Origin: Orbicella franksi
Lineage: Eukaryota
NCBI GenBank assembly: GCA_964199315.1
Contig: OZ116702.1
Coordinates: forward strand, 32,736,001 to 32,800,000
Reading direction: 5' to 3'
DNA: 64,000 nucleotides
Shown piece after piece: positions 1,686-14,745 of this stretch. Under the pieces are notes generated by a model. It ran no database searches, had not been told where the DNA came from, and saw nothing but the letters and a program-made list of their open reading frames with translations. The translations under genes were made by a program, and so were the position numbers. Position 1 is the first letter of the stretch, and the number at the start of each line of letters is the position of its first letter.

Positions 1686-1746
1686 AGATAAGGGCAATCT
1701 TCTGCCAATCTCCCATTGGCATTATCTTTAATATGGGAGGTCTGTA
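1686..1746 (+). promoter_or_regulatory. Proximal cis-module of Hlx gene 1: GATA / inverted CCAAT pair / GATA / GLI-type site
   Basis: AGATAA 1686-1691; TGCCAAT 1703-1709 and ATTGGCA 1715-1721 (perfect 7-bp inverted pair, 5-nt spacer); TTATCT 1722-1727; TGGGAGGTC 1734-1742. Lies 82-142 nt upstream of the ATG; three motifs recur in the same order upstream of the paralogue. Function is inferred. Confidence 0.6.
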
Positions 1747-1827
1747 AGTAGAGTACCTGTGTCGCGCTTATGCGGTGTCACAACTCCATGTCAGCGTTGA
1801 CTTACAAGAGCTCTTATCCAACACAGC

Positions 1828-4800
1828 ATGTTTAACTCGCCTCATTTAGTTTACTGTAACTGTGCCTCGGCGCCGTTGCTTTACTGCCCGAGTGTTCACT
1901 CCATGTGGAACTGCTCCATTCCAAACCCACCGTCCGTATACAGAGCGTCTTTAGATGCAGTGGCCACACACAGTGGCGCGAGCGTGCAAGAGGAAAACAC
2001 CGAGACAATCTCGGCGAGTAGAAACCTCAAATTTGGCATTGAGAACATCCTGTATGGACAACTGCAGTCAGGTAGGTCGCTGAGCAAAAGTGCAAAACGT
2101 ACCTAGCTTGTTAAACGGTTGTAATTGCAGTGTACCTCTGACTAATTCTTTAGGCTGTATCTTTCGGTCAGTCTAACTCAACGAGAACGTGTCAACCGAC
2201 TTCGTTGTTCTTCAACTCAATTCTGAGGACGCGAACCTTTTGGCTATTGCTTTATCAATGATCATTTTAGTGCAGTGTTAATTGAGATTTTACTGGTTAT
2301 TCACACTTGATATTTTCGTTATTGCTATACCCATTTCAGTCATATTAGACTCATATTCATGGACTGTTTCTTACAAAGATTGACAGCCTGTACGCGGTTT
2401 CAGTCCATGATCAGTTTGTGTCGCTTAATGTGCAATTGTCATCCATCGGTGAACTGACTCATTGCTTTGATGAGATAAGATAAATTTTTGTTTACCATTT
2501 ACCCTGTAATGTTTTTTTTTTAATCATTTAATGGCTGTTCCATATTGCGAGCATTGTTTAACGTTCCAGATTCGGTAAACACGAATATAAATAGCCGGTC
2601 AAATTTTGTAACTAAATGGCACACGCTTGCGAACAGCGCACGCGGCCGTCACCGCAAGCCTGACTGAACTTCACCTAACCTGATCAGCTATAGTGGTTTT
2701 AACTTGTATCTCAAGGAAGTCTTTAAGCAATTATCAAAATTGCAGACTATATATTGCGTATTTGACGTTGCTCCATTCCATACAGTCGTTTCTAGCACTG
2801 CGCACGACCAGTGAAAGAGGACGTCCTTTGTGGCTTAATTCTCTCGGCGTTTCAACTAACTCTCAGTTCTTCGTGATAATGTCTTAGCGGAAGACGTGGC
2901 CTTCATTCTTCGCCGTTTTGCTTGAGAAATCAATAGGTTAAATGCTTGGCGGAAAATAACTTGATTGCGAAGAATACTGGAAACGCGGATATTTCCCTCT
3001 CCAGGGTTACGGCATAGATTTCAGAATTAGATCACTGAAGAACAAGCTTGGATTTATGATAACTACGTGGAAATCAACCAAATTTAAGACTTAGCAAGAC
3101 CTAACCCAGACAACATTTAAATAATTTCAAATTTTCTACCAGAAACAGAACCGGTTTAGTCTTAACCTTACCTGCCGACAATGGTTTTTATATATTTACC
3201 TTACTCTCCTTAATATGACACGAATTGCATTTTCCTTTCTTGTTAGCGAGTGACACAATCCTCATTTATACTTGATTTACAGAGTCTAATAATTGTTCTT
3301 GTTATTTTAGGTTTATGTTATTACAAAAGGCTCGCTACGACCCATAAAACTCCGCCGACGTTAAAGTAAACTCAATTAATTTCATGACTATAAATTTGAG
3401 TTTAGATTAACACATGAAAAAATAAATTCAATAGGCTTCAGGTCATCGTCTACATACACGAATCCGCAATAAGCACGGCCTGCAAACAGAGAACAAGTTT
3501 TTAGTCCGAACGGAAGAAAATTATCAGTTTAGAAAGGTGTAAATGTACTTCAACGGACATAAGCAACGAAACACTGAAATTACGGCTAAGGGACAAAACA
3601 CGGATCTCGTTTTATTGTTGTTTCAGTATCGTACTACCTGTTCTAAGTCGAAAGATCAGGAAACGATGTTACTGATTCTGGAAGATTTTAAAAACGGGGC
3701 AAAAAACTTACGTAAATAGTACGTCCGGAGCATTAGGCTAATTCCAAATTGTATTTAGTGAGCGATCATGGACAACATGAAAGCAAAAACACAGCAGTTT
3801 TCTGTGTTCGTTTTGCGTGGGGTGATGTTATTTTGCGGTTAAATAAACAAAATTTGAAGTTCTATGCAACAATTCATTAATTATAATATCCGTTCGAAAG
3901 AGCTTTGAAGGAGACGTTTCACTTTGCACACACTGGACATGAACGAGATTAAAAGCAGGCGATGAAATACCTCTTTTGGCTTCTCATTCCATGCCTGTTA
4001 AAGCCCATATAAATGCCATGAATGCAGAAAGTGTTTACCGCATATTTATCACGTTAGTCCCAGCTGAAATGTGTTAATAGTATTAGCAATTTTAAGTACT
4101 TTATGACAATTAATCACAAACACTACCCAAAGAATACAATCCAAAGTTATGAGATCGCTTGCATTTGCTATTCTTTTCACACATATACCTTGCCCCTCAT
4201 CCTTAATTGAATGTCTTGGCTTTTGTTATTTTTAACAACTAACTGCTATCGTGGAACGGAAATGATTTGATTTTTTAAAGACTAACCTGAAATTGATACA
4301 TTCTCAACCGAAAGGCATGGCGGACGATCCTTTCTTTCACGAGAAGTAGAGTTTGCATGAATGTTTGGTCTTTGCGACCTATCCAAAAAGCCGTGTCAAT
4401 AAAATGATGTTTTCTGTTTTGTAGAGGGAGAGTTGATATGGATTTTTGGTCTCTTTAGGTCTGTTTAGGTGCCTCTATGGTAAAGAAAGAGGAATTATGA
4501 AGTTTGGCCTTTACGCTTCACCCGATAATACTGTACTGTAGAGTCGGGAACGGTTTTACGAAATAACGTCTCTCCGGCCGGGACCAGTGTTTATAAGACA
4601 CGGTTTATGTGAATGTTAGTCTCTCTGAGGCTGAACGTTATGTCATTAAGACTAGTATTAATCATGGTAGTGTCTGTTGGAGTAGCCTTTTGAGTGCTTT
4701 GATCGACTAAACTGAGTAATGGTTAAACTGTTCACTTCTGGGCTCGTAATCGAATCCTTTGCAATTGAAGCAAAACGACGAAGTTTAAACACGGAAGCAA

Positions 4801-6865
4801 GAATCAGTTTGAATCAAAACCGAAAACTAACCATACAGCAAATAAATTGTAACACGAAATTTCTCTTTGTATTGCTTGACACTCGATGTACTCTGTGTTT
4901 TTTTCAAGGTAATTATTGTGTAGGGTAATTTTGATGATTTCGATCTATACTAATTGTCATAAGATTGTTTTATAGTTTACTTTACTGATACTTTACATTC
5001 AAGCCTGTTAATAGCTTTCTAATAGTCTGTAGCTCATTGATATTTGCTTCTCTTTTCCCCTACGTTGGTTCAACACGGCTAGCTCTGCTGATCTAGTTTA
5101 GGATATTTGTTAGAATCGGGGAAAACGCTGATACCGAAATGCTGAGTATTACACAACAGCGATTGCGCAAATCGTTCTTGAAAACCAAGTACGTTTTTGC
5201 CACTATTAGTATTCAGGAAAAGCAAAAGACCTACACATTTTTTTAGCGATTCCCTTATCACAGACTAGGTTTAGTTTCAGTTCAATTGCTAACTAAAAAT
5301 CAACCGCCATTGTCAAACACAGATAAGCAACCTCACGGATATTAACACTCGAACTTTCTATGAATATATATCCGTTTTTCGCCAGGGTATGTGGTTGTTT
5401 ATTATTGTTGTGCCGAAATGTTCAAAGTTGGGTGATTCTGCGATAACATAGTCACGATCGAACGCAAAGTTGCTTTTCCAATTCAGTAAACTTTGAAAGC
5501 CTTCCAATTTCGATTACATCGATTGACTAATTCGAAACGCCTTACTCTATGTCGATGAGTGAGTACCCATGAAGTCGACTCAGATAATTGATATCGCTTG
5601 GAAGTTCACATCAGATACGGGGAATAAACTTAACTAACGTCAAAAAAGGAATCTGGCTTTGGGCACGAAAAGATTTATACCAAAGATAGATGGACAAATA
5701 TGGCAACCATTCAGTTTCTGAAAATCATCACATGGTCTTGCTCAATGGCCAGTTTTGCACATAACAAAACATCCATCTCTTCACATGGGCGTTATCTTGA
5801 TTTCCGATGAGGTTTTTCTTGAAAGACAAAATTGCGTGTTAAAAACTTTTTAATATATTGCAAAATGATACTTGATCTAATCCATCTTTACAGTGAAATC
5901 TGTTAAATACATTTAATGTTAATCGGAAAGATCTAGGCTTTAAAATCTCGTATGTCATTGACAGTTCGCTCATTTCTTCTGCACGACATCAACGGATTGA
6001 TACAGATGTATTTGTTGTTTTAAAACAACAGTGTTAATTATATATATCCCTCATATTCATCCATTTACCAATCATCGAGGTTGACCACAGGAATTTCTTC
6101 CTATCAACCCGGCGGCGCCAACGCAAAGCGACTAGCAACTGCTTTCTTCTGCCGTAAGCCGGCTCTGTACAAAGTCTGCAAAATCTTTCTTCCGTGACCT
6201 TGCTTTTGGCAAAAGACCTTTTTACTGAGGGCCTATTGTACTCTGTGACTTGTCAGCTACAAACAACATCTTTATTTAAATCTCTGGAAACTTTAATTTC
6301 ACCTTTTGAAAGTGATAACTAGATACGGGCCATGCTTTCCAGCAATTGAAGTTCTGATCCAGTCTTGTTCAACACTTAAAGCATGCAGTTCTTGCACTAC
6401 TGCAAAATTTAGAATTACATCTAGGGGTAATGATGCGCCATGCACCTCTCAGAAGTCCTGACAGGATAGTTTGAGAAATCAATCAGTGAATAGAACAAAT
6501 GACAGACACACCTTAAAACAAGGGTGCAAGGTGCGAAAAGCGAGAACGTCCGACAGTACCCGAGAGTTGACGAACAGTTCACGAAAGTCCAGCTCTCCAG
6601 AGCTATCAAACGAGCGCGACTAAACAAAGAGAGGAACGAACACTCGAATTGACAAAAATTGCGCAGTACGTGTGTGAAAGGCCTTGGTTAAATTGCTGGT
6701 TTTCAGTGTCACGCAATTCAAAATAGATCAAAATAAAAATCAAAACCGGTCAATAGATAAAGTCCAGAATCTGGGAAATGAAAGAAGGTAAATATGCAAA
6801 GACTCTCGCCAAAATTCTGGTCACAGCAATTTTTCTTATGCGAGATACGTGGAGAAATTTTTTAC

Positions 6866-6909
<44 letters not shown>

Positions 6910-6945
6910 TCCGTATGGGCACCAACATGGCGGCCGGAAACCAAC

Positions 6946-6991
<46 letters not shown>

Positions 6992-7121
6992 CTCGAGGAA
7001 CTCTAAAACACTAAAATAATATTTTTTTTTAAGACATGAACTGTTCAGATAGCCAAGTGCCCCGAATGAAGTCACTTTTTTAACCATCATGACAGCTCTC
7101 TAGGCCGTCATGTAAATGCCG

Positions 7122-7154
<33 letters not shown>

Positions 7155-7858
7155 GTATCACAAAACCAAGAACCCATTCGGAGTGAAAATTTGTTTGAAT
7201 ATCAGTTTTCAGCTGCTCTTATACATAATTAAAGTGAAATCTAAGTAAGATCAATAGTTTTGTGGTTCGAATTTTAGTGACGTCATGTGAAAACCAGCTA
7301 TTAACAGCTGAAAACGTTGATGACTGGGAGAGAGGGTTTCCGTTTTAGGTCACTCTTATGTTCGTTTCCCCTGGGGTTAAGATTCGATTTGAATGCTGAT
7401 GTCGTACTAACTTGCAACACTGTGATGGTTTTTCAGATCATCGTCATGGAGTCCACAGTCAATTTTCACACAACCGAGAACTCAGCTATATCTCTCATCA
7501 GCCTTTCACCCCGCCCATGCGCACTTCCAGCCGCCCTTGGTGTCGCCCAGTCTTCACGCAGCTGCAGCGGCGAGGACTGGAAAAGCGTTTTCAGGTCACC
7601 AAATACGTCACCAAACGGGAACGGTTACAGATCGGCGCCATGTTGGGTTTGTCAGAAACGCAAGTAAAAGTGTGGTTCCAAAACAGGAGAACAAAGTGGA
7701 GGCACGAGGCTGCGCGCAAAGAAGAAAAGCAAAAAGAGCAAGCTTTAAACAAGGCGAAGGAAAACCAGAAACCCGAGACGAGTGAGATTGGCGAGACACA
7801 AGAAAATGAAGAGGAATGTCTGTCCAGTAACAAAGAGACTTTACTGGAGGAACCTTAA
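1828..7858 (+). CDS. HLX: Hlx (H2.0-like, ANTP/NKL class) homeobox protein, 2 exons, 221 aa
   Basis: join(1828..2071,7437..7858). Exon 1 ends after an eh1 motif (LKFGIENIL) at TCAG|gtaggt, phase 1. Exon 2 acceptor ttttcag|AT with branch point TACTAAC at 7405-7411; phases match. Homeodomain [60 protein letters not shown] has the Hlx-diagnostic W3 and GLEKRF/KYVTK; about 40/60 identical to human HLX as I remember it. Confidence 0.88.
6691..7302. mobile_element. MITE (non-autonomous DNA transposon) in the Hlx gene 1 intron
   Basis: Ends aattgctggttttca (6691) and tgaaaaccagctatt (to 7302) are ~15-bp inverted repeats; internal palindrome catgttggtgcccatccgtatgggcaccaacatg at ~6897-6930; no coding capacity. 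Confidence 0.75.
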
Positions 7859-8044
7859 TAACACTGATGAACATTTTGGAAGTCACGATATCTCAGTGTA
7901 TACTCACTGTAGAAGCAGCATTCTTGCCATTATTATCTGAAAGACTGTTTTGGTCGTAGAATGATAGAAATCACAATTTAATGGACATCACTCAGAGGCA
8001 CGCCTCTCCTCACAGTGAACACTATCACCTCATATTCGATCAAC

Positions 8045-8221
8045 TAGGCTATTTCCCTTCTGTCACTGTATCAAAACAAATCTTCGCGCGAGACCATTCA
8101 TATGCAAATGCTTTCATCTCCACATTCATTTTCGTGCAAATCAAACTCATTTTCATAAGAAAAAGCTTTTCAAGAGGACACGTTTTAAAACAGAGGCAAA
8201 AGGCAATTCGGAAATGACCTA
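8045..8221. mobile_element. Short MITE
   Basis: Terminal inverted repeats taggctatttcc ... ggaaatgaccta. Confidence 0.6.
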
Positions 8222-10586
8222 GGTTTTGCTGGAAAGACAGGGCAAGGTTAAAAGCTATCTAACATTGCCTCGGATTAGATTAATATTATAGTGAGCTTTT
8301 TCAGTGACAAGAAAAAAACGGAGTTCACAAGGAACTTGAATTTTACGATTAAACGGACCGGCAGCTTGATGCTGTTACAACGGAACCCATAATGTGACAT
8401 TTATACGAACAGGGTGGAGGCCCGGGCCAGTATCAACTCGGGCCTATAAAATAAGGTCTATCAGCTCGGATCTATAAACTCGGGTCTATCAGCTCGGATC
8501 TATGATAGTGACCCAAGCTCAAATCAAGTCTACTAACTTATCATTTCTTTTGATTTTACCTCTGGAAATCCACAGTGAAACGTCAATTAAGACAATTTCT
8601 AGATGTCAATAATTCTTTGTATTTTGTGTATTTTATGACATGATTTTGATATTGTCAGCAAACACATGACATGTTGATCGGAAGGACGATTTGCACTGGA
8701 TGAGTGCAGGAAACTAGACAGTACAACTCAGGCACTCGCTCACCACTCACATTGCTCATCTTTACCAATATTACGTTTACAACTGAATCACCCACCAATC
8801 AGGTGGATCTGTGATACACTCGACAAAATTTCAAAAGCCAATTTAAAGATAGAGTAAGTCATTCTGCTCCGTGATTCCCTCTTCCTTTCTGTAGTTAGTC
8901 AGGTCAATGACCATCAGCTGCTTGAGGCCGGCGGATAGCTAAAAAAGGTATTCTGCTAGGGAGGGAGAAGGCAAGATGATAAAGCGATTGCGAACTGAAA
9001 TGAGATAGAGCTAGTGAAAAAAGAACGCTTCAATTTTGGCCCGCCTGCCTCAAGACTAGGTTCCCTCGATCTCTCCGAAAAACGTCTAAAAGTAGCTACC
9101 GCAATTTTCGAAATTCTTCGTATTTTTAAACGTTGTACTACCACAGTGTTTTTCAAAAATGTAATAAATAAACATTAAATACCATACCAAAATGGTAAGG
9201 AACAACACCCTTCCTAAATTTAAAAGGAGCGTTAATATGAAAAGAAATAGGGGTAATGTTCAAATTGCGCAAGTTTCTATTTGCTCGTTGGCACTGTACC
9301 GGTAGGTATGACTAGTAAATAATTTATTTTGTGGAGAATTGTATTTTGTAAATTAAAAATTGTTCCTCATCTGTCTTCCCTCCGGGCATGCGCACTTCCA
9401 GTCGTCAAAAACAACATGGCCTTGTTCATGTTAGGGAACCGATTGGTGCGAGTTCATATAGGCAGCGGAAAAGCTGTTAAAATAAAATAAAACTAAAAAT
9501 AGGCATGTTAACACGAGAATTTGTTACTTACTTCGATCATGTTGTAATTATTTTATCTGAAGTGAAAGTCTTAAATAAAAAGGAAAAAAAGTTACTTTCA
9601 ACTGAAATGACTTTGAATGGCCGGAAAATCTGGCATACTTTGAATGAAACAAGCGGAAAGCACTCTCATTATCAGGATGAGCTCTTATGAACTCCAGGGC
9701 GTCTGTTATCAACATTTGGGATCATAGGAAAAATAGCTATGTTCCTGAAAGGAAAACAACATTAGGGACAAGATAAAAGAGGCGACAGAATGATAAGCAC
9801 CTCGCACGAAATCAAGAATGTTTTGCAGAAAAAAAAAAAAAAACCAGCGGCAAGTTTTGCAAGCAATGATTTTCAAAACTGGACCTAACGCAAATCAGAC
9901 CACACAGGATTCCAGATCAGGGAGGCAACACCGAACCATACTCCAAATAAACAGCATTTTAAGCACAGTTTTTTTAAAAGGGAAAGTTACCTAATTTAGC
10001 TACAAAGTCGTAAGGTCAGTCAGGACATAAAGCTGTCTACAGATTTAGTTCGTACCTCCCACAAGAAACTTGGATGTTTTGACACCTAGGTAGCGTGTAC
10101 CGGGGGTACGTCCCCCGGGTACCTCCCTGTTTAAGCTCTGGCACAAGTTATCAGAATTTACTTTAAATGGGAGTAAAGTCTTTTGAGCTGTGGCAGTATA
10201 AACGCAATATGGATTTTGCCTTTTTGAGTGAAGTTTTCCTCTTGAAAGTCAGCAAGGCCGATAGATTTTTCGATATAATCTTCATTTCTATCAACAGTCT
10301 GTAATGTGTAAATAAAGAAAAGAGCAAAGCACTTAATTCTTCGATTTCTACTTCTTCGGGTGAAATAGGGCGTGGATTGAAAAGAACAGGTCTGAAAAGG
10401 GTACGAGTCTTACAAGGTGTGGCGTGAAATATATTTGAAACAGAATCATACATTTGCTGTAAAATAAGGTAAGGGCTGCAAGAACCAAGTGGCGCACTCC
10501 CTCCAAAAATTCCAACAAGAACCCCCCGGAAGTGCAATGGTAACAGACTGATGCGTGCACGATGCGTGGAGAGATAGTCTATAACT

Positions 10587-10681
10587 GATAAGGTGATTGG
10601 CATAAACAGGTGTGGGACAGCGAACTTTGCCGACTGAGCTAAGCTGAATTTAGCCTTAGCTACTTGCGTGGGAGGTCTGTA
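10587..10681 (+). promoter_or_regulatory. Proximal cis-module of Hlx-like gene 2: GATA / CCAAT / GLI-type site
   Basis: GATAAGG 10587-10593, ATTGGCAT 10596-10603, TGGGAGGTCTGTA 10669-10681; all three strings are identical to, and in the same order as, those upstream of gene 1. Confidence 0.6.
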
Positions 10682-10723: not shown

Positions 10724-13700
10724 ATGAGTTCGATAATGGTTTATTACCAATGCAACTTCTGCGGAACTCCTCCACGAGCAAGTTCCGTTAACGGCTCTGT
10801 AGCACCGCTACAATCGAGTGTATCTCTCGTACCGTTTTGTACAAACGGTTGTACAAATGTGTCAGCAAAAGCACTGACAAAAACAAGCTTGGCGTCCGAG
10901 ACGGGAAATATCACGAGGAAAGCTGTAACATTCAAACAACAGGAGCATCTCTCGTTTGGAATTGACAGGATCCTTTATGGCTCTTCCAAAGCAGGTAAAA
11001 ATTTGACTTCACTTAATTCCAGAAAGAGCAAAGGGCGACCTTTATGCGTAGAGAAATCATCGGCTCGTTATTGATATAATATTATAGGCAGACAATCCGG
11101 TGCAAAAAAGGCCTTGTGTGCGTGCAAGCCCTGGCTACTTAGCCTGCCTTCACCTCATGTGTTTGCGCGATTTACGGATTTTCCAACTCCGATTAATAGG
11201 TACACTTAACAGAATTAAACGATTTATTGGCCAGTATTCAATGTTGTGTTTTAAACCCCTGCAGTGTTGGGCTCTGAGACAAACCGATGTAAACGGATAA
11301 ATTCGTGCGGAATTTTTTTTTGTGGTGCAATACTCCAGGTCGAATTGAACGAAGACCAAATGTACCTGGATCAATAACAGTGAAAAAATTCTACTGACAG
11401 GCGCGAATCGAATAGAGTGGAGATTAAATAGAACGGTTTTTAGCCGATCTGATTATCGTTAACAGCTTACTGATTCTATTCATTGCTAATTTGCTATAAA
11501 AACCTTTCATAATTGCTCGCAAAACACAAACGCCGACGAGATTTAGACACACACGACGAATTCGCGATAGAACTGGAAATTCTCAAGCGCGACCTCTCAT
11601 CATGTCTGAAAACCACAATGCCCAAAAGAGATCACCAGAGAATTTTCTTCGCATTACGAACGGCGCATTAAAATAACTGTGGCTTTCGAACTCTTTTAAA
11701 TAGTGCAAGGCTTAAAAGGTAAACGAACTCCGGGGAATTCAACCATCTTTTTGGTTAAAAAAAAAAAAAAAAAAAAAAATGAAATTCAGCGGGGGGCATC
11801 TTCCTTCAAACAGTGTGGCCGTGGCGCAATTGTTGCCTGCGTGTGTGTCCGGCGCGCATTATAGTCCCATTATACGTTCTATTGGTCATGACTGGCCATC
11901 TTGGTTTCGGACAAAGAGTCGCTTACACATCCGGCATGTTTACAAAACTTATCAGACACCTGTCATGTTGTTATTCAACATTTCGTGCATTTGATGCCGG
12001 AAAAATCAAATGAAATTAAAGATAAAGTGATTCAAGCTATGAGTGTGATTGTTTTAGTGTGTAATTCAATCTTTTTATAGCCTCGATACATTACACCATG
12101 AATTCGTCCCGGAAATTGCCAATCTACGGAAAAAAAGCATTTGTGATTGACTTCGAGAGATTACTTGAAACTGGTCTGTTTCTCTTAGAAGCCGATTAAA
12201 ATAGTTTGAAAACATCTTGTCAATACTATTCTAAGGATATGTAGTGCTCTGGGTAAAGGCCGAATTTCAAAGTTCATTCCTAGTAGGGGTAGTCTTAGCA
12301 GGGGAAGAAAGTAGATTACATTTGCCGAGGTCACATTTGAAGAAGTGATAATTTCTTCATCGTGAAATGTAGAAAATGTACTGTTTGTGTTGGAGTTATT
12401 ATACTCTTACAATGCAGGTCAAGGCATCAAGTCTTTGGAATTGTTGAGCTGCAATACCGGGTTTCTCTGTGGGTTCCCGAAGTAATTTGAACTGAGGCGA
12501 AGTCGCTTTAGACGACCTTTTGTTTCCGATTCGGACTAAAAAATGAAACAAAATTAAGGCTTGAAGTAATCTTCATAAGTGTTAGCAAACGGAGCCTTGC
12601 AGACAGTTTCGCAGAAACTGAACTTCGTATCTACAGTATTTCCAAGGTTGTTTTAAAGGAAGACTTTCGTAAATAGTAAATGATTCTTGTCCAACCTTGT
12701 TCCCAGGGTCTCTCGTCTTCTGGACACTCAGGAAGAGAAAGCCTGGGAACGAGGCTTGAGATTGTCATGAGTGATCACGTGATCCTTTTTTCAAATGATG
12801 ATTAAAATCAATTCGCTCAAAACCTCGAAACATATGATCTATCAAACATTTCCTTTGTGAATCGCTTGTTCGTGGGGTAAAAGTTGACAAAATAGGGCAA
12901 AATACCCTGCAGAGAGACTTTCAATTTTAAAACATGTCGCTTTTTAATAGCTCAGAATAGAACTGAGATCATGGTAAATCATGGTGCGGAGGCAGTCAGG
13001 AAACCCATTGTTATCTAAGCCTCGCGAGTTCAACTACCCAGAGAATGTCTTTGACTATACTGGACTAGAAAGTGGGAATTCTGTGCTTTGTTTGTTGAGA
13101 TACCTTTGGGTAGAATTTAAGCTTTAGTCTTTTTTGGGTTGAGTTGTTAGTAAAACCGTGAACGTGTTTGCCTGGTTAAGACTGAATAGCGCTCCATTCA
13201 GCCCAAATGGTGTACCGGTTAGCCTGAATAGCACGGACTCAACAGTGGTCAGCTCTCAGTAATTGTAACTGTAATAACTGAGCAACCTGTAGTGAACTAG
13301 CGACCTACGTACTTGGCTAAAACAGTTAACTTGTAAACAGTAAAACTTTAGACTAGTACTAAGATAGTTATTTTATTAATTTAAATGGCACCGGCCCAGT
13401 GCCATATGTGGGTTGAGTTTGTTGTTGGTTCTCGCCTTGCTCCGAGGCTTTCTCTGGGTTTTCCGGTTTTTCTCCATCCTGAAAAAAAAAAACATCATCC
13501 CCAAATTTCAATTCGACCATGGCCAGGATGAAATCCAGCTGAGGCTGATGTAGCTTCCATTCTAAATATTGTAATTTATTTAATCTTAAAACAGTGATTA
13601 TATGGAGCACCCGAAGCTCGCATGGGCAAACGTGAAGTGATCGATTCAAATCCTATGCAGATCGCGCAATTTTTGCTTTTAAACTCAAACCTTGCGTGAG

Positions 13701-14745
13701 TCCTTTGACGCCGAGCGTCACCTTTGAACTTGCAATAAGAAGATATTGCCATAATCCGTTTTTAAATTTTATTGATATAGTGCTACTGACAGATGCCTAA
13801 AAATTAATATTGCGTGTTCCAAAAAGATTTGACTTTGTAAAGTTTTTACATCTGATACGTCATAAACCGATTGCAAAACTAAATTGCTTTTATTCTGAGA
13901 TCGAAGTTGTCCTTGTATCACTTTAACACCATTATCTTAATCGTTATGCAACGTTTTCACGTTACAATCTGAGAAAATAGCTTCTGTGCTATACAGAAAA
14001 ATGTTACAAAAAAGTGGCTTACATGATGGCACAGAAGAGCAATATTTCGAATATTGGCTACATTTATTGTTAAAGTTTACCCTATCAGTGGTCTTACGGT
14101 TGACGCCCTGTAAATAAAACAAGCAATTACCTTGTTGTTTTTATCAGGGCAAGAGAGAGAGAGAGATCTTCGCTTTGGTATTTACTAATTCGCCGGAAAC
14201 ACACTCTAGAGAGATAGATCTAAAAACCTTAAAAGACTTCCGAGAAAACTGCTCTTCCACGCAACACGTCAACCTTATCGCGCAATGAAAACTTTTCAGG
14301 TCTGATGCAATGTCATCATATCTTGAAACTTAGCCTTGGGTAACATGTTAATACTTTTCATTTCTTAAAGTTATTTCATCTCAGACTGTGTCTCCAATTG
14401 ATCATAAAGCTATCTTATTCTGTCTGTTTTTCAGACCTGTTTGGTAAGCGTCTTAATGTTACCCTCGCCACTCCCCGCAGTACAACAAGGCAAATTACTC
14501 ACTCCACACCCTGGTCCCGTCCGGTTTTCTCTGACCACCAGCGCAAGACTCTAGAAGACCGCTTTCAGCTTCAGCACTACTTGAACAAACGGGAGCGTTA
14601 TCACTTGTCTCTGTGTATTGGACTTACAGAACATCAAATTAAGGTGTGGTTCCAAAACAGACGAGTCAAGTGGAGACAACGACAGAAGGCGAAAAAACAA
14701 AGCACAAAGCTGTCCCGTGGGGCACCCGGTGCGCAGAAACATTGA
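10724..14745 (+). CDS. Second Hlx-like homeobox protein (divergent tandem paralogue), 2 exons, 193 aa
   Basis: join(10724..10994,14435..14745). Exon 1 ends after eh1 (LSFGIDRIL) at GCAG|gtaaaa, phase 1; exon 2 ttttcag|AC, phases match. Homeodomain [60 protein letters not shown] (W3, Q50, N51). Confidence 0.85.
12692..12758. mobile_element. Tiny palindromic MITE
   Basis: caaccttgttcccaggg ... cctgggaacgaggcttg inverted ends around a short spacer; related half-elements at ~39163 and ~53656. Confidence 0.55.
13388..13582 (+). mobile_element. 5'-truncated SINE with a V-SINE-like core
   Basis: atatgtgggttgagtttgttgttggttctc...ctgggttttccggtttttctcc resembles the V-SINE central domain (from memory) and ends in an AT-rich tail (tctaaatattgtaatttattt). 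Confidence 0.5.

Follow-up and report, generated by a model that had tools for sequence, protein, structure and literature searches.

An ancient 5'-leader element shared by two Hlx-type homeobox genes of the stony coral Orbicella franksi

The closest known counterparts of the genes considered here are the HLX genes of Nematostella (HLXa-d; Ryan et al. 2006/2007; PMC1779571, PMC1779807), NK-like homeobox genes that likewise have two exons and a homeodomain of Hlx type; one of them, HLXb, is expressed in the pharyngeal endoderm at the prospective mesenteries (PMC1779807). In contrast to the coral pair, the Nematostella genes have no described regulatory element, and the likeness is drawn at the level of the family, not gene by gene. 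The tissue in which Nematostella HLXb is expressed adjoins the Hedgehog-expressing pharyngeal ectoderm. As to the elements themselves, the promoter of human PTCH1 contains site BS1 (GACCTCCCA), a non-consensus but functional GLI site (Winklmayr et al. 2010, PMC2830928); according to the same study, any base is accepted at position 5 of GLI sites. No paper in the literature searched ties Hedgehog/GLI to cnidarian Hlx. The classical place of an NF-Y CCAAT box is some 60-100 nt ahead of the transcription start.

The window, i.e. the whole stretch of DNA analysed, comprises 64,000 nucleotides of O. franksi (contig OZ116702.1, positions 32,736,001 to 32,800,000), and all features below lie on its + strand. 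It holds two Hlx-type homeobox paralogues, A and B, recognized as such in a preliminary description and sharing the same two-exon layout with identical intron position and phase. Exon 1 of gene A is present in RNA from 1427 to 2071, where the 5' leader takes up 337-401 nt or more ahead of the start codon at 1828 and the donor GT follows at 2072; its coding part (1828-2071) comprises 81 codons plus 1 nt (phase 1) and includes an eh1-like motif. Exon 2 (7437-7858) provides the homeodomain (Pfam PF00046, E = 1.8e-19) and the stop codon, and the 3' UTR reaches at least to 8722. In gene B, coding exon 1 (10724-10994, ATG at 10724) has 90 codons plus 1 nt (phase 1), and the homeodomain (PF00046, E = 2.8e-19) is encoded by exon 2 (14435-14745). 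A recount of the two homeodomains gave the identity reported before, 33/60. At its source, the orthologue of gene A from Actinia bears the name H2.0-like homeobox protein; going by the nearest named proteins, a JGI match carries the name HLX1 and the gene B orthologue is auto-named Hox-B8a-like. Two further paralogues on contig C15 are nearer to A than B is (69% and 63% identity), and the homeodomain of the one of them that was compared is identical to that of A at 44/60 positions.

The preliminary description had noted three strings shared by the two genes just upstream of their start codons and read them as an ordered GATA-CCAAT-GLI promoter module. All three could be located as reported: GATAAGG at 1687-1693 and 10587-10593, ATTGGCAT at 1715-1722 and 10596-10603, and the 13-mer TGGGAGGTCTGTA at 1734-1746 and 10669-10681, in the same order and orientation upstream of both ATGs. 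The 13-mer occurs twice in the window, against 0.01 expected, and a shared string of at least 13 nt has a probability of 0.0013 among 100,000 random pairs of 160-nt segments drawn from it. The same kind of pair shares 1.8 strings of at least 7 nt on average and a collinear chain of three with a probability of 0.047; neither the 7-mer nor the 8-mer exceeds chance when taken singly, so that the 13-mer alone stands out. A further GLI-type variant, GACCACACA at 9898-9906, had rightly been taken as near chance, as 28 of 100 shuffles reach it. In the genome as a whole the 13-mer is found 49 times, compared with 10 for the reversed control. About 37 of these copies form the ends of dispersed MITE-like repeats, which belong to one or two families with common flanks (...GTTATTTGCCGGC on the 5' side and TAGTGAAAAACTGTGACC... 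on the 3' side), and about 12 are unique, which equals the background expectation. A chance match, or a fragment of a dispersed repeat, would draw on these repeat termini and on the chance level of the accompanying strings. It is nevertheless very improbable: both Hlx copies are free of any repeat flank (distances of 20 and 27 of 34, like unrelated unique copies), the segment statistics are against it, and it is contradicted by the exact element at the orthologous place in other anthozoans.

The 13-mer is a real and ancient 5'-leader element of both Hlx genes, and its conservation reaches from stony corals to a sea anemone. All Hlx-A-type genes compared have an exact copy upstream, namely those of Orbicella and its relatives, Acropora, Porites and Actinia tenebrosa, which covers robust and complex corals and one sea anemone, and the B orthologues have a near-exact one; the earlier argument that the 13-mer exceeds a neutral residue is borne out. 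Relative to the ATG it lies at -94 in Orbicella and in its relative L011, at -81 in Acropora (sequence L013, whose exon 2 matches an A. palmata protein at 99% identity), at -82 in Porites A, at -79 in Porites A3 and at -87 in Actinia tenebrosa. In the A lineage it is part of a transcribed 17-mer, ATATGGGAGGTCTGTAA (1731-1747), identical in 11 A-type sequences from at least seven taxa while the surrounding flanks have diverged; the 17-mer holds the 13-mer, a GLI-like 9-mer (1734-1742) and a short upstream open reading frame (1733-1747), and 9 of its 26 metagenome matches are coral Hlx-A leaders. The Porites paralogue A2 reads ATG TGC TGT CTG TAA. Across the genes compared, elements of the 13-mer type keep the sense orientation and a fixed place, 44-95 nt ahead of the start codon, and the orientation holds even in Porites, where gene B is inverted relative to A.

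In gene B the element (10669-10681) lies 55 nt before the ATG and is transcribed in RNA contigs L024 and L025. It is preceded by CG, which gives GTG instead of ATG, and followed by C, and no uORF is formed. The B-lineage consensus, CGTGGGAGGTCTGT, is matched with 0-2 mismatches and represents the best-conserved island of the B upstream region, with the pattern CGTG(G/T)GA(G/C)GTCT(G/T)T and neither a consistent reading frame nor a common stop. The other two strings of gene B (together 10587-10603), situated at or just upstream of the RNA contig 5' ends, have no counterpart at the corresponding alignment positions of Acropora and Porites B and are shared only with the close relative L011. With such a limited distribution, a three-part ordered module common to both paralogues is not supported. 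A different string, GAGATA(G/A), 10-15 nt upstream of GATAAGG, is common to Orbicella B and Porites.

Nor does the element lie in an upstream promoter. The spliced contigs L014 and L015, starting at 1468 and 1491, join position 2071 to exon 2 of gene A, and a contig of run X1 (1427-2071) has a depth of 30.7, compared with 8.4 upstream, and a loose end that continues into exon 2. The RNA contigs of gene B start at 10599 and 10614. With RNA 5' ends at 1427-1491 (A) and 10599-10614 (B), what had been called a promoter module is transcribed 5' leader in both genes. Raw poly-A runs yielded two reads only. In gene A the promoter is better placed about 350 nt further upstream, in a deeply conserved, TATA-containing block (1180-1452) apparent when Orbicella is aligned with four robust-coral relatives, L068 and Acropora. 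The block contains AAATTAGATTA (1232), AGTGATTCTTCAACACC (1284), TTGACCCTTTGAAAACA (1321), the TATA-like ATATAAAG (1340-1347) and ACATACGACAGGTG (1432-1445), and its parts b1-b3 recur in Porites, 440-530 nt ahead of A, A2 and A3. The element lies at about +270-310 from the RNA 5' end in A and at about +55-70 in B, so that its distance to the ATG is much better kept than its distance to the RNA 5' end. This, like the transcription of the element in both genes, suits a role in RNA or translation and counts against a DNA element.

The GATA and CCAAT strings fared differently in the two lineages. The GATA-type core AGATAA (1686-1691, within the feature 1686-1693), which overlaps the GATAAGG of the preliminary description, is invariant in 11/11 A-type leaders including Actinia and is changed to AGATCA in Porites A2. 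Likewise, the A lineage does have a conserved CCAAT, a forward box (TGCCAAT, 1703-1709, CCAAT from 1705) some 29-30 nt upstream of the 13-mer, kept in 10 of 11 A-type leaders; Actinia has a CCAAT at the same 30-nt spacing, aligned differently. The copy originally singled out, ATTGGCAT at 1715-1722, is intact only in the window and the closest relatives L011 and L090, and is altered in L072, L086, L018, L068, Acropora, Porites and Actinia in the A-type leader alignment. Like NF-Y CCAAT and GATA (WGATAR) elements, the CCAAT at 1705 and the AGATAA at 1686 keep their order and a near-fixed spacing upstream of the 13-mer. Unlike the classical position at -60 to -100, both lie at least 235 nt downstream of the RNA contig 5' end or, for the CCAAT counted from the contig starts at 1427-1491, at least +214 nt inside the transcript, and in B one contig starts inside ATTGGCAT (10599) and the other just after it (10614). 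Furthermore, they are not conserved in the B lineage, and Porites A2 is devoid of both.

The first nine letters of the 13-mer, TGGGAGGTC, had been described as a one-mismatch variant of the GLI/Ci/TRA-1 consensus. This is correct: TGGGAGGTC departs from GACCACCCA at position 5 only, with C4 and C6 intact, and is the exact reverse complement of BS1. A match of the GACCACCCA type with both cytosines is present in all 11 A-type copies, in Orbicella B and in Acropora B. Like BS1, the 9-mer stands near the 5' end of a developmental gene and keeps the essential C4 and C6; unlike BS1, which belongs to a promoter, it sits in a transcribed leader, as a putative site known from its sequence match. The conserved span of 12-17 letters exceeds what a GLI site needs, and the A lineage shows no variation in the flanks ATA...TGTAA, which a GLI site would be expected to leave free. 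Position 5 is A in 15/15 A- and B-type copies, although GLI binding and a glycine codon would both leave this position free. Some B orthologues are altered at critical positions, L011 B (TGGGACGTC) with G at the essential position 4 and Porites B with A at position 7, and the match fails in both. Judged from these comparisons, the frozen central A and the B-lineage changes do not fit a simple GLI site.

The same letters may be read in another way. In the A leader, a mini-uORF, ATG GGA GGT CTG TAA (MGGL-stop, 1733-1747), is covered by the spliced RNA contigs and present in 11/11 A-type leaders, its stop lying 65-81 nt before the main ATG. A second, 22-codon frame, uORF1 (1679-1747), ends at the same TAA, and its start lies within a GATG that is invariant in the 11 A-type sequences. 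Conserved uORFs of this kind, for which Hlx output would be tuned by capture of scanning ribosomes shortly before the main start, with the GATA-like and GLI-like strings as by-products of the uORF sequence, represent a possible though rather doubtful explanation of the element. The putative frame resembles the conserved short uORFs of regulatory genes in its good AUG context (A at -3 in most corals, G at +4), in its four codons and stop, and in its steady spacing. The invariant block opens 2 nt ahead of the uATG and closes exactly at the TAA, which also speaks against a DNA element, and codons 5-7 of uORF1 differ mostly at third positions (AGG/AGA/AGT/AAA; GCA/GCT/GCC/GCT). In Porites A2, both uATGs, the four-codon length and the TAA are retained with different codons (MCCL-stop) while the GLI-like, GATA and CCAAT cores are all lost; this, too, argues against a DNA element. 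On the other hand, every synonymous position of the mini-uORF is invariant in the 11 A-type sequences, unlike in known short uORFs, and at such deep divergence this exceeds the need of a uORF or of a four-residue peptide. uORF1, for its part, varies in length and stop among the A-type leaders. An AUG with an in-frame stop in the transcribed leader, kept among orthologues, exists in A and not in B, whose orthologues keep the core with GTG and no common frame or stop; the part common to A and B is therefore not explicable by a uORF.

Recognition of the letters as such could also take place at the RNA level, with UGGGAGGUCUGU in both 5' leaders being bound by an RNA-binding protein or pairing with another RNA; translation, stability or localisation would then be controlled without involvement of a uORF. 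Transcription in both genes, the constant sense orientation even in the inverted Porites B, the anchoring to the start codon instead of the RNA 5' end, and the letter-by-letter invariance including the central A would all suit such a motif. It is nonetheless unlikely: neither secondary structure nor covariation is conserved (consensus energy -3.2 kcal/mol, 0 compensatory pairs), there is no known protein or RNA partner to name, and near-matches to the 20-mer on either strand of the genome number 21, no excess over the 14 of the control, so that neither a complementary small-RNA locus nor a wider regulon is indicated.

The explanation preferred here, held tentatively and with some reserve, is that the 12-13-mer TGGGAGGTCTGT(A) may be an ancestral cis-element of the Hlx pair, a factor-recognition site that would predate both the gene duplication and the coral-anemone split. 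It would serve as the DNA recognition site of a sequence-specific factor just downstream of the promoter. The invariance of all synonymous mini-uORF positions points to recognition at the nucleotide level, and the lack of conserved RNA structure counts in favour of DNA. Since TGGGAGGTC is the same as a GLI site variant that functions in humans, the best-matching candidate among known binders would be a protein with multiple zinc fingers from the GLI/GLIS/ZIC group; the changes at position 4 in L011 B and position 7 in Porites B would weigh against it. The expression of Nematostella HLXb in tissue next to Hedgehog-expressing ectoderm would agree with such a site. In the A lineage the same letters would probably add translational control through the MGGL-stop uORF, which would account for the extension of the conservation to 17 letters there.

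Taken one step further, the element may have been in dual use for more than 500 Myr, as a GLI/GLIS/ZIC-type site for Hedgehog-type control and as a four-codon uORF in the same letters, with B keeping the DNA site after duplication and Porites A2 the uORF. This improbable scenario, if true, would provide the first case of an input to a cnidarian homeobox gene that is both deeply conserved and resolved to the nucleotide. Letter-for-letter conservation of non-coding sequence between stony corals and sea anemones is rare. A more general lesson is that promoter-motif readings upstream of an ATG require a mapped transcription start, and that for motifs located in an mRNA leader, as here, a transcription-factor reading has to compete with one based on uORFs. 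Should the GLI reading be true, a concrete Hedgehog target in Cnidaria would be at hand; if the uORF reading is true, the A-type frame would be among the oldest conserved uORFs outside Bilateria. The conservation pinpoints an element of 12-17 nt in genes of a family that takes part in the patterning of gut and mesenteries.

The two neighbouring Hlx-type homeobox paralogues, gene A (Hlx-A) and gene B (Hlx-B), both lie on the forward strand, with coding exons at 1828-2071 (exon 1) and 7437-7858 (exon 2) in A and at 10724-10994 and 14435-14745 in B. Each exon 2 carries a homeodomain (PF00046, E ~1e-19), and in both genes an Asp codon shortly after an eh1-like motif is interrupted by a phase-1 intron. 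The window is 98.8% identical to O. faveolata GCA_002042975.1 across 10 kb. The preliminary description had reported three strings shared upstream of both genes, and its particulars were confirmed: GATAAGG (1687 and 10587), ATTGGCAT (1715 and 10596) and the 13-mer TGGGAGGTCTGTA (1734-1746 and 10669-10681), all on the forward strand, precede ATG 1828 and ATG 10724 in identical order, and the homeodomains agree at 33/60 positions, as had been stated. The claim that the 13-mer exceeds chance also held, with two occurrences in the window versus 0.01 expected; for 100,000 pairs of 160-nt segments drawn at random from the window, a shared string of at least 13 nt has P = 0.0013. On average a pair has 1.8 strings of at least 7 nt in common, 4.7% of pairs yield a collinear chain of three, and neither GATAAGG nor ATTGGCAT is in excess over its chance frequency within the window. 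Among the shared strings, the 13-mer alone exceeds chance. The further variant GACCACACA at 9898, already described as near chance, is indeed at chance level and common only to the close relative L011.

The possibility that the 13-mer is a fragment of a dispersed repeat turned out to be right for the genome at large and wrong for the Hlx genes. The 497-Mb genome holds 49 copies versus 10 of a reversed control; all 49 were fetched and their flanks compared. About 37 of them are ends of dispersed MITE-like repeats (one or two families) that have flanks in common and carry terminal inverted repeats, and the remaining ~12 are unique, which equals the background expectation. Since neither Hlx copy has any of the repeat flanks around it, a repeat origin was rejected, and the 13-mer is repeat-borne elsewhere in the genome, not at the Hlx genes. 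The MITE-like repeat itself starts with the same 13-mer (...GTTATTTGCCGGC followed by TGGGAGGTCTGTATAGTGAAAAACTGTGACCGAGG...) and has terminal inverted repeats; examples with the 13-mer in central position are L002, L004, L006, L030, L046, L053 and L065, and the ~37 copies belong to this repeat or to a related family (L003, L032, L052).

Orthologues were gathered by protein searches with the homeodomain exons, contig look-ups and a metagenome scan for the 17-mer, the invariant A-lineage extension of the 13-mer (1731-1747). They comprise robust corals (L011, L072, L086, L090, L018, L068), an Acropora locus (L013, exon 2 99% identical to an A. palmata protein), two Porites loci (L009, L010; three A-type genes, A, A2 and A3, and one B) and the sea anemone Actinia tenebrosa (L012). 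The possibility that the 13-mer is missing from other anthozoans did not hold, as it is exact upstream of A-type genes in other corals and in Actinia tenebrosa, at -79 to -95 from the ATG in all of them bar Porites A2. The only invariant runs in an 11-sequence A-type alignment are GATG (4 nt), AGATAA (6 nt) and ATATGGGAGGTCTGTAA (17 nt); AGATAA is thus kept throughout the aligned A lineage, and Porites A2, outside the alignment, has AGATCA. An intact ATTGGCAT at 1715 is confined to the window, L011 and L090, and the conserved CCAAT box is a forward TGCCAAT (1703-1709) that precedes the 13-mer by 29-30 nt in Actinia as well as in corals. In the window, TGCCAAT and ATTGGCA, separated by CTCCC (1703-1721), form an inverted repeat of 7 bp and so a double CCAAT box, and a second possible pairing is between CTCCCAT (1710-1716) and its complement ATGGGAG (1733-1739). 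Conservation of either pairing goes no further than the closest relatives. The Porites lobata cluster (L010, CALNXK010000035.1, 1-23000) differs from that of Orbicella and Acropora in that B is inverted and head-to-head with A, the two ATGs being 2.1 kb apart; there the 13-mer is present in A and A3 and lost in A2.

In the B lineage, conservation in the upstream region peaks at the core of the 13-mer, which is exact in Orbicella and reads TGGGAGGTCTGTT in Acropora, TGTGAGGTCTGTT in Porites and TGGGACGTCTTTA in L011; TGGGACGTC and TGTGAGGTC are variants of the 13-mer in this lineage. GATAAGG and ATTGGCAT of gene B are common to the close relative L011 only, so the GATA-CCAAT-13-mer order is an A-lineage trait, and the comparison does not bear out the ordered module proposed for both paralogues. 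Because robust and complex corals both have both genes, the A/B duplication is older than the split of these clades. Judged from these comparisons, the 13-mer element is real and predates both the A/B duplication and the coral-anemone split, which is roughly half a billion years old. A search for exon 1 of a distant B orthologue (L093/L094) found none. Two further Hlx-type homeoboxes lie on one contig of the genome searched (G000:C15:11247686-11247880, minus strand, and G000:C15:61437-61649, plus strand); both resemble gene A more than gene B does (identities of 69% and 63%; 44/60 homeodomain positions for the former), and their sequence (RAVFSNLQRKGLEKRF...) looks closer to bilaterian Hlx. 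Their first exons were not located, and the 10 kb before their homeodomain exons hold no 13-mer-like motif with at most two mismatches.

The placement of the module in an upstream promoter has to be revised, as spliced RNA contigs contain the whole of it in gene A and the 13-mer in gene B. For gene A, spliced metatranscriptome contigs (L014, L015) start at 1468 and 1491, cross the module from end to end and splice 2071 to exon 2, and a contig of RNA run X1 (1427-2071) has a depth of 30.7, versus 8.4 upstream and 14.9 in the intron, with a loose end that enters exon 2. Six spliced contigs were fetched from a second species; four of them (L017-L019, L021) contain the 13-mer, and three of these four the CCAAT box as well. 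Gene B has spliced contigs beginning at 10599 and 10614 (L024, L025), and the 13-mer lies within both. Contig starts cannot fix the TSS, and three 2026 poly-A runs yielded 0, 0 and 2 reads. The strongest coral-wide conservation for A is found upstream of the module, at ~1180-1450, with a TATA-like ATATAAAG at 1340-1347, and Porites A, A2 and A3 have three blocks of this region as well, 440-530 nt upstream. The TSS of gene A would accordingly lie near 1370, which would put the module at about +310 to +375; the 13-mer of gene B is at about +55 to +70. The promoter region of gene A, 1180-1452, is very strongly conserved among Orbicella, other robust corals and Acropora, and partly in Porites, and better so than most of coding exon 1 of gene A. 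ACAGGTG, an E-box or Snail-type core conserved in orthologues of A and B, occurs at 1439-1445 and 10606-10612, near the points where the RNA contigs begin (1427-1491 for A and 10599-10614 for B), and may be a second feature common to both genes.

Given its position in the leader, the element might act purely at the level of translation. The A-lineage 17-mer reads AT ATG GGA GGT CTG TAA, a mini-uORF (MGGL-stop) whose stop codon lies 65-81 nt before the main ATG and is exactly where conservation ends, and a second upstream ATG sits inside the invariant GATG. Porites A2 (ATG TGC TGT CTG TAA) retains both upstream ATGs, length and stop, but its GLI core is gone, its GATA core reads AGATCA and its CCAAT box TCAAT. 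This pattern favours a uORF for the A-type leader. The core in the B lineage, however, has GTG and no common frame or stop, so a uORF cannot account for what A and B have in common; it is only in the A lineage that the sequence qualifies as a conserved uORF. Moreover, none of the synonymous sites in the mini-uORF varies, so peptide coding is insufficient to explain the conservation. A purely translational explanation is possible but doubtful. An RNA-binding motif is improbable: RNAalifold on nine leaders found no conserved structure or covariation, and genome matches to the 20-mer with at most three mismatches numbered 21 versus 14 for the control, none near homeobox exons. A wider regulon or a complementary small-RNA locus was likewise rejected, the near-matches being at control level and away from homeobox genes. 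In all coral A-type leaders the end of the 17-mer is part of GTAAGT(A) (1744-1750), a 5' splice donor of consensus type that Actinia lacks, and a CAG lies one base before the main ATG (1823-1827), such that an intron of ~80 nt would fuse MGGL in frame with the main ORF; no such joint occurs among the spliced contigs examined (L014-L022, X1 contig).

We tentatively read the 13-mer as a site for a sequence-specific DNA-binding factor just downstream of the promoter, for which the GLI/GLIS/ZIC group would be the best-matching candidate, with the conserved 4-codon uORF superimposed on it in the A lineage. The Hlx sequence TGGGAGGTC is the reverse complement of the human GLI site PTCH1 BS1, GACCTCCCA. 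The extended GLI/GLIS consensus is CGTGGG-N-GGTC, and the GLI-like site of gene B is preceded by CG. In a PTCH1 reporter, any base at position 5 gives approximately consensus activity, positions 4 and 6 being essential (PMC2830928). The central A is nevertheless invariant in 15/15 copies, although neither a GLI site nor the Gly codon constrains this base, which renders the GLI model and the uORF model alike incomplete; position 4 is altered in B of L011 and position 7 in Porites B. Of the GLI assignment, then, the sequence definition stands and the expected constraint pattern fails, so that the element would resemble a GLI site in the former and differ from it in the latter. The sole fact found in support of the conjectural Hedgehog/gastrodermis narrative is that HLXb of Nematostella is active in the pharyngeal endoderm where the mesenteries will form (PMC1779807). 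The literature search returned no paper connecting GLI with cnidarian Hlx, and PMC4887206 holds nothing about cnidarian Gli sites. String matches to GACCTCCCA and TGGGAGGTC in the literature were mostly primer or vector sequences. The occurrence of TGGGAGGTCT just upstream of the TATA box in the CMV immediate-early promoter was treated as coincidence.

As far as the alignments reach, the 13-mer is an ancient, functional-looking 5' leader element of these Hlx-type genes. It belongs to known kinds, conserved cis-element or uORF, with no prior description found, and its main value lies in its sharp definition and direct testability.
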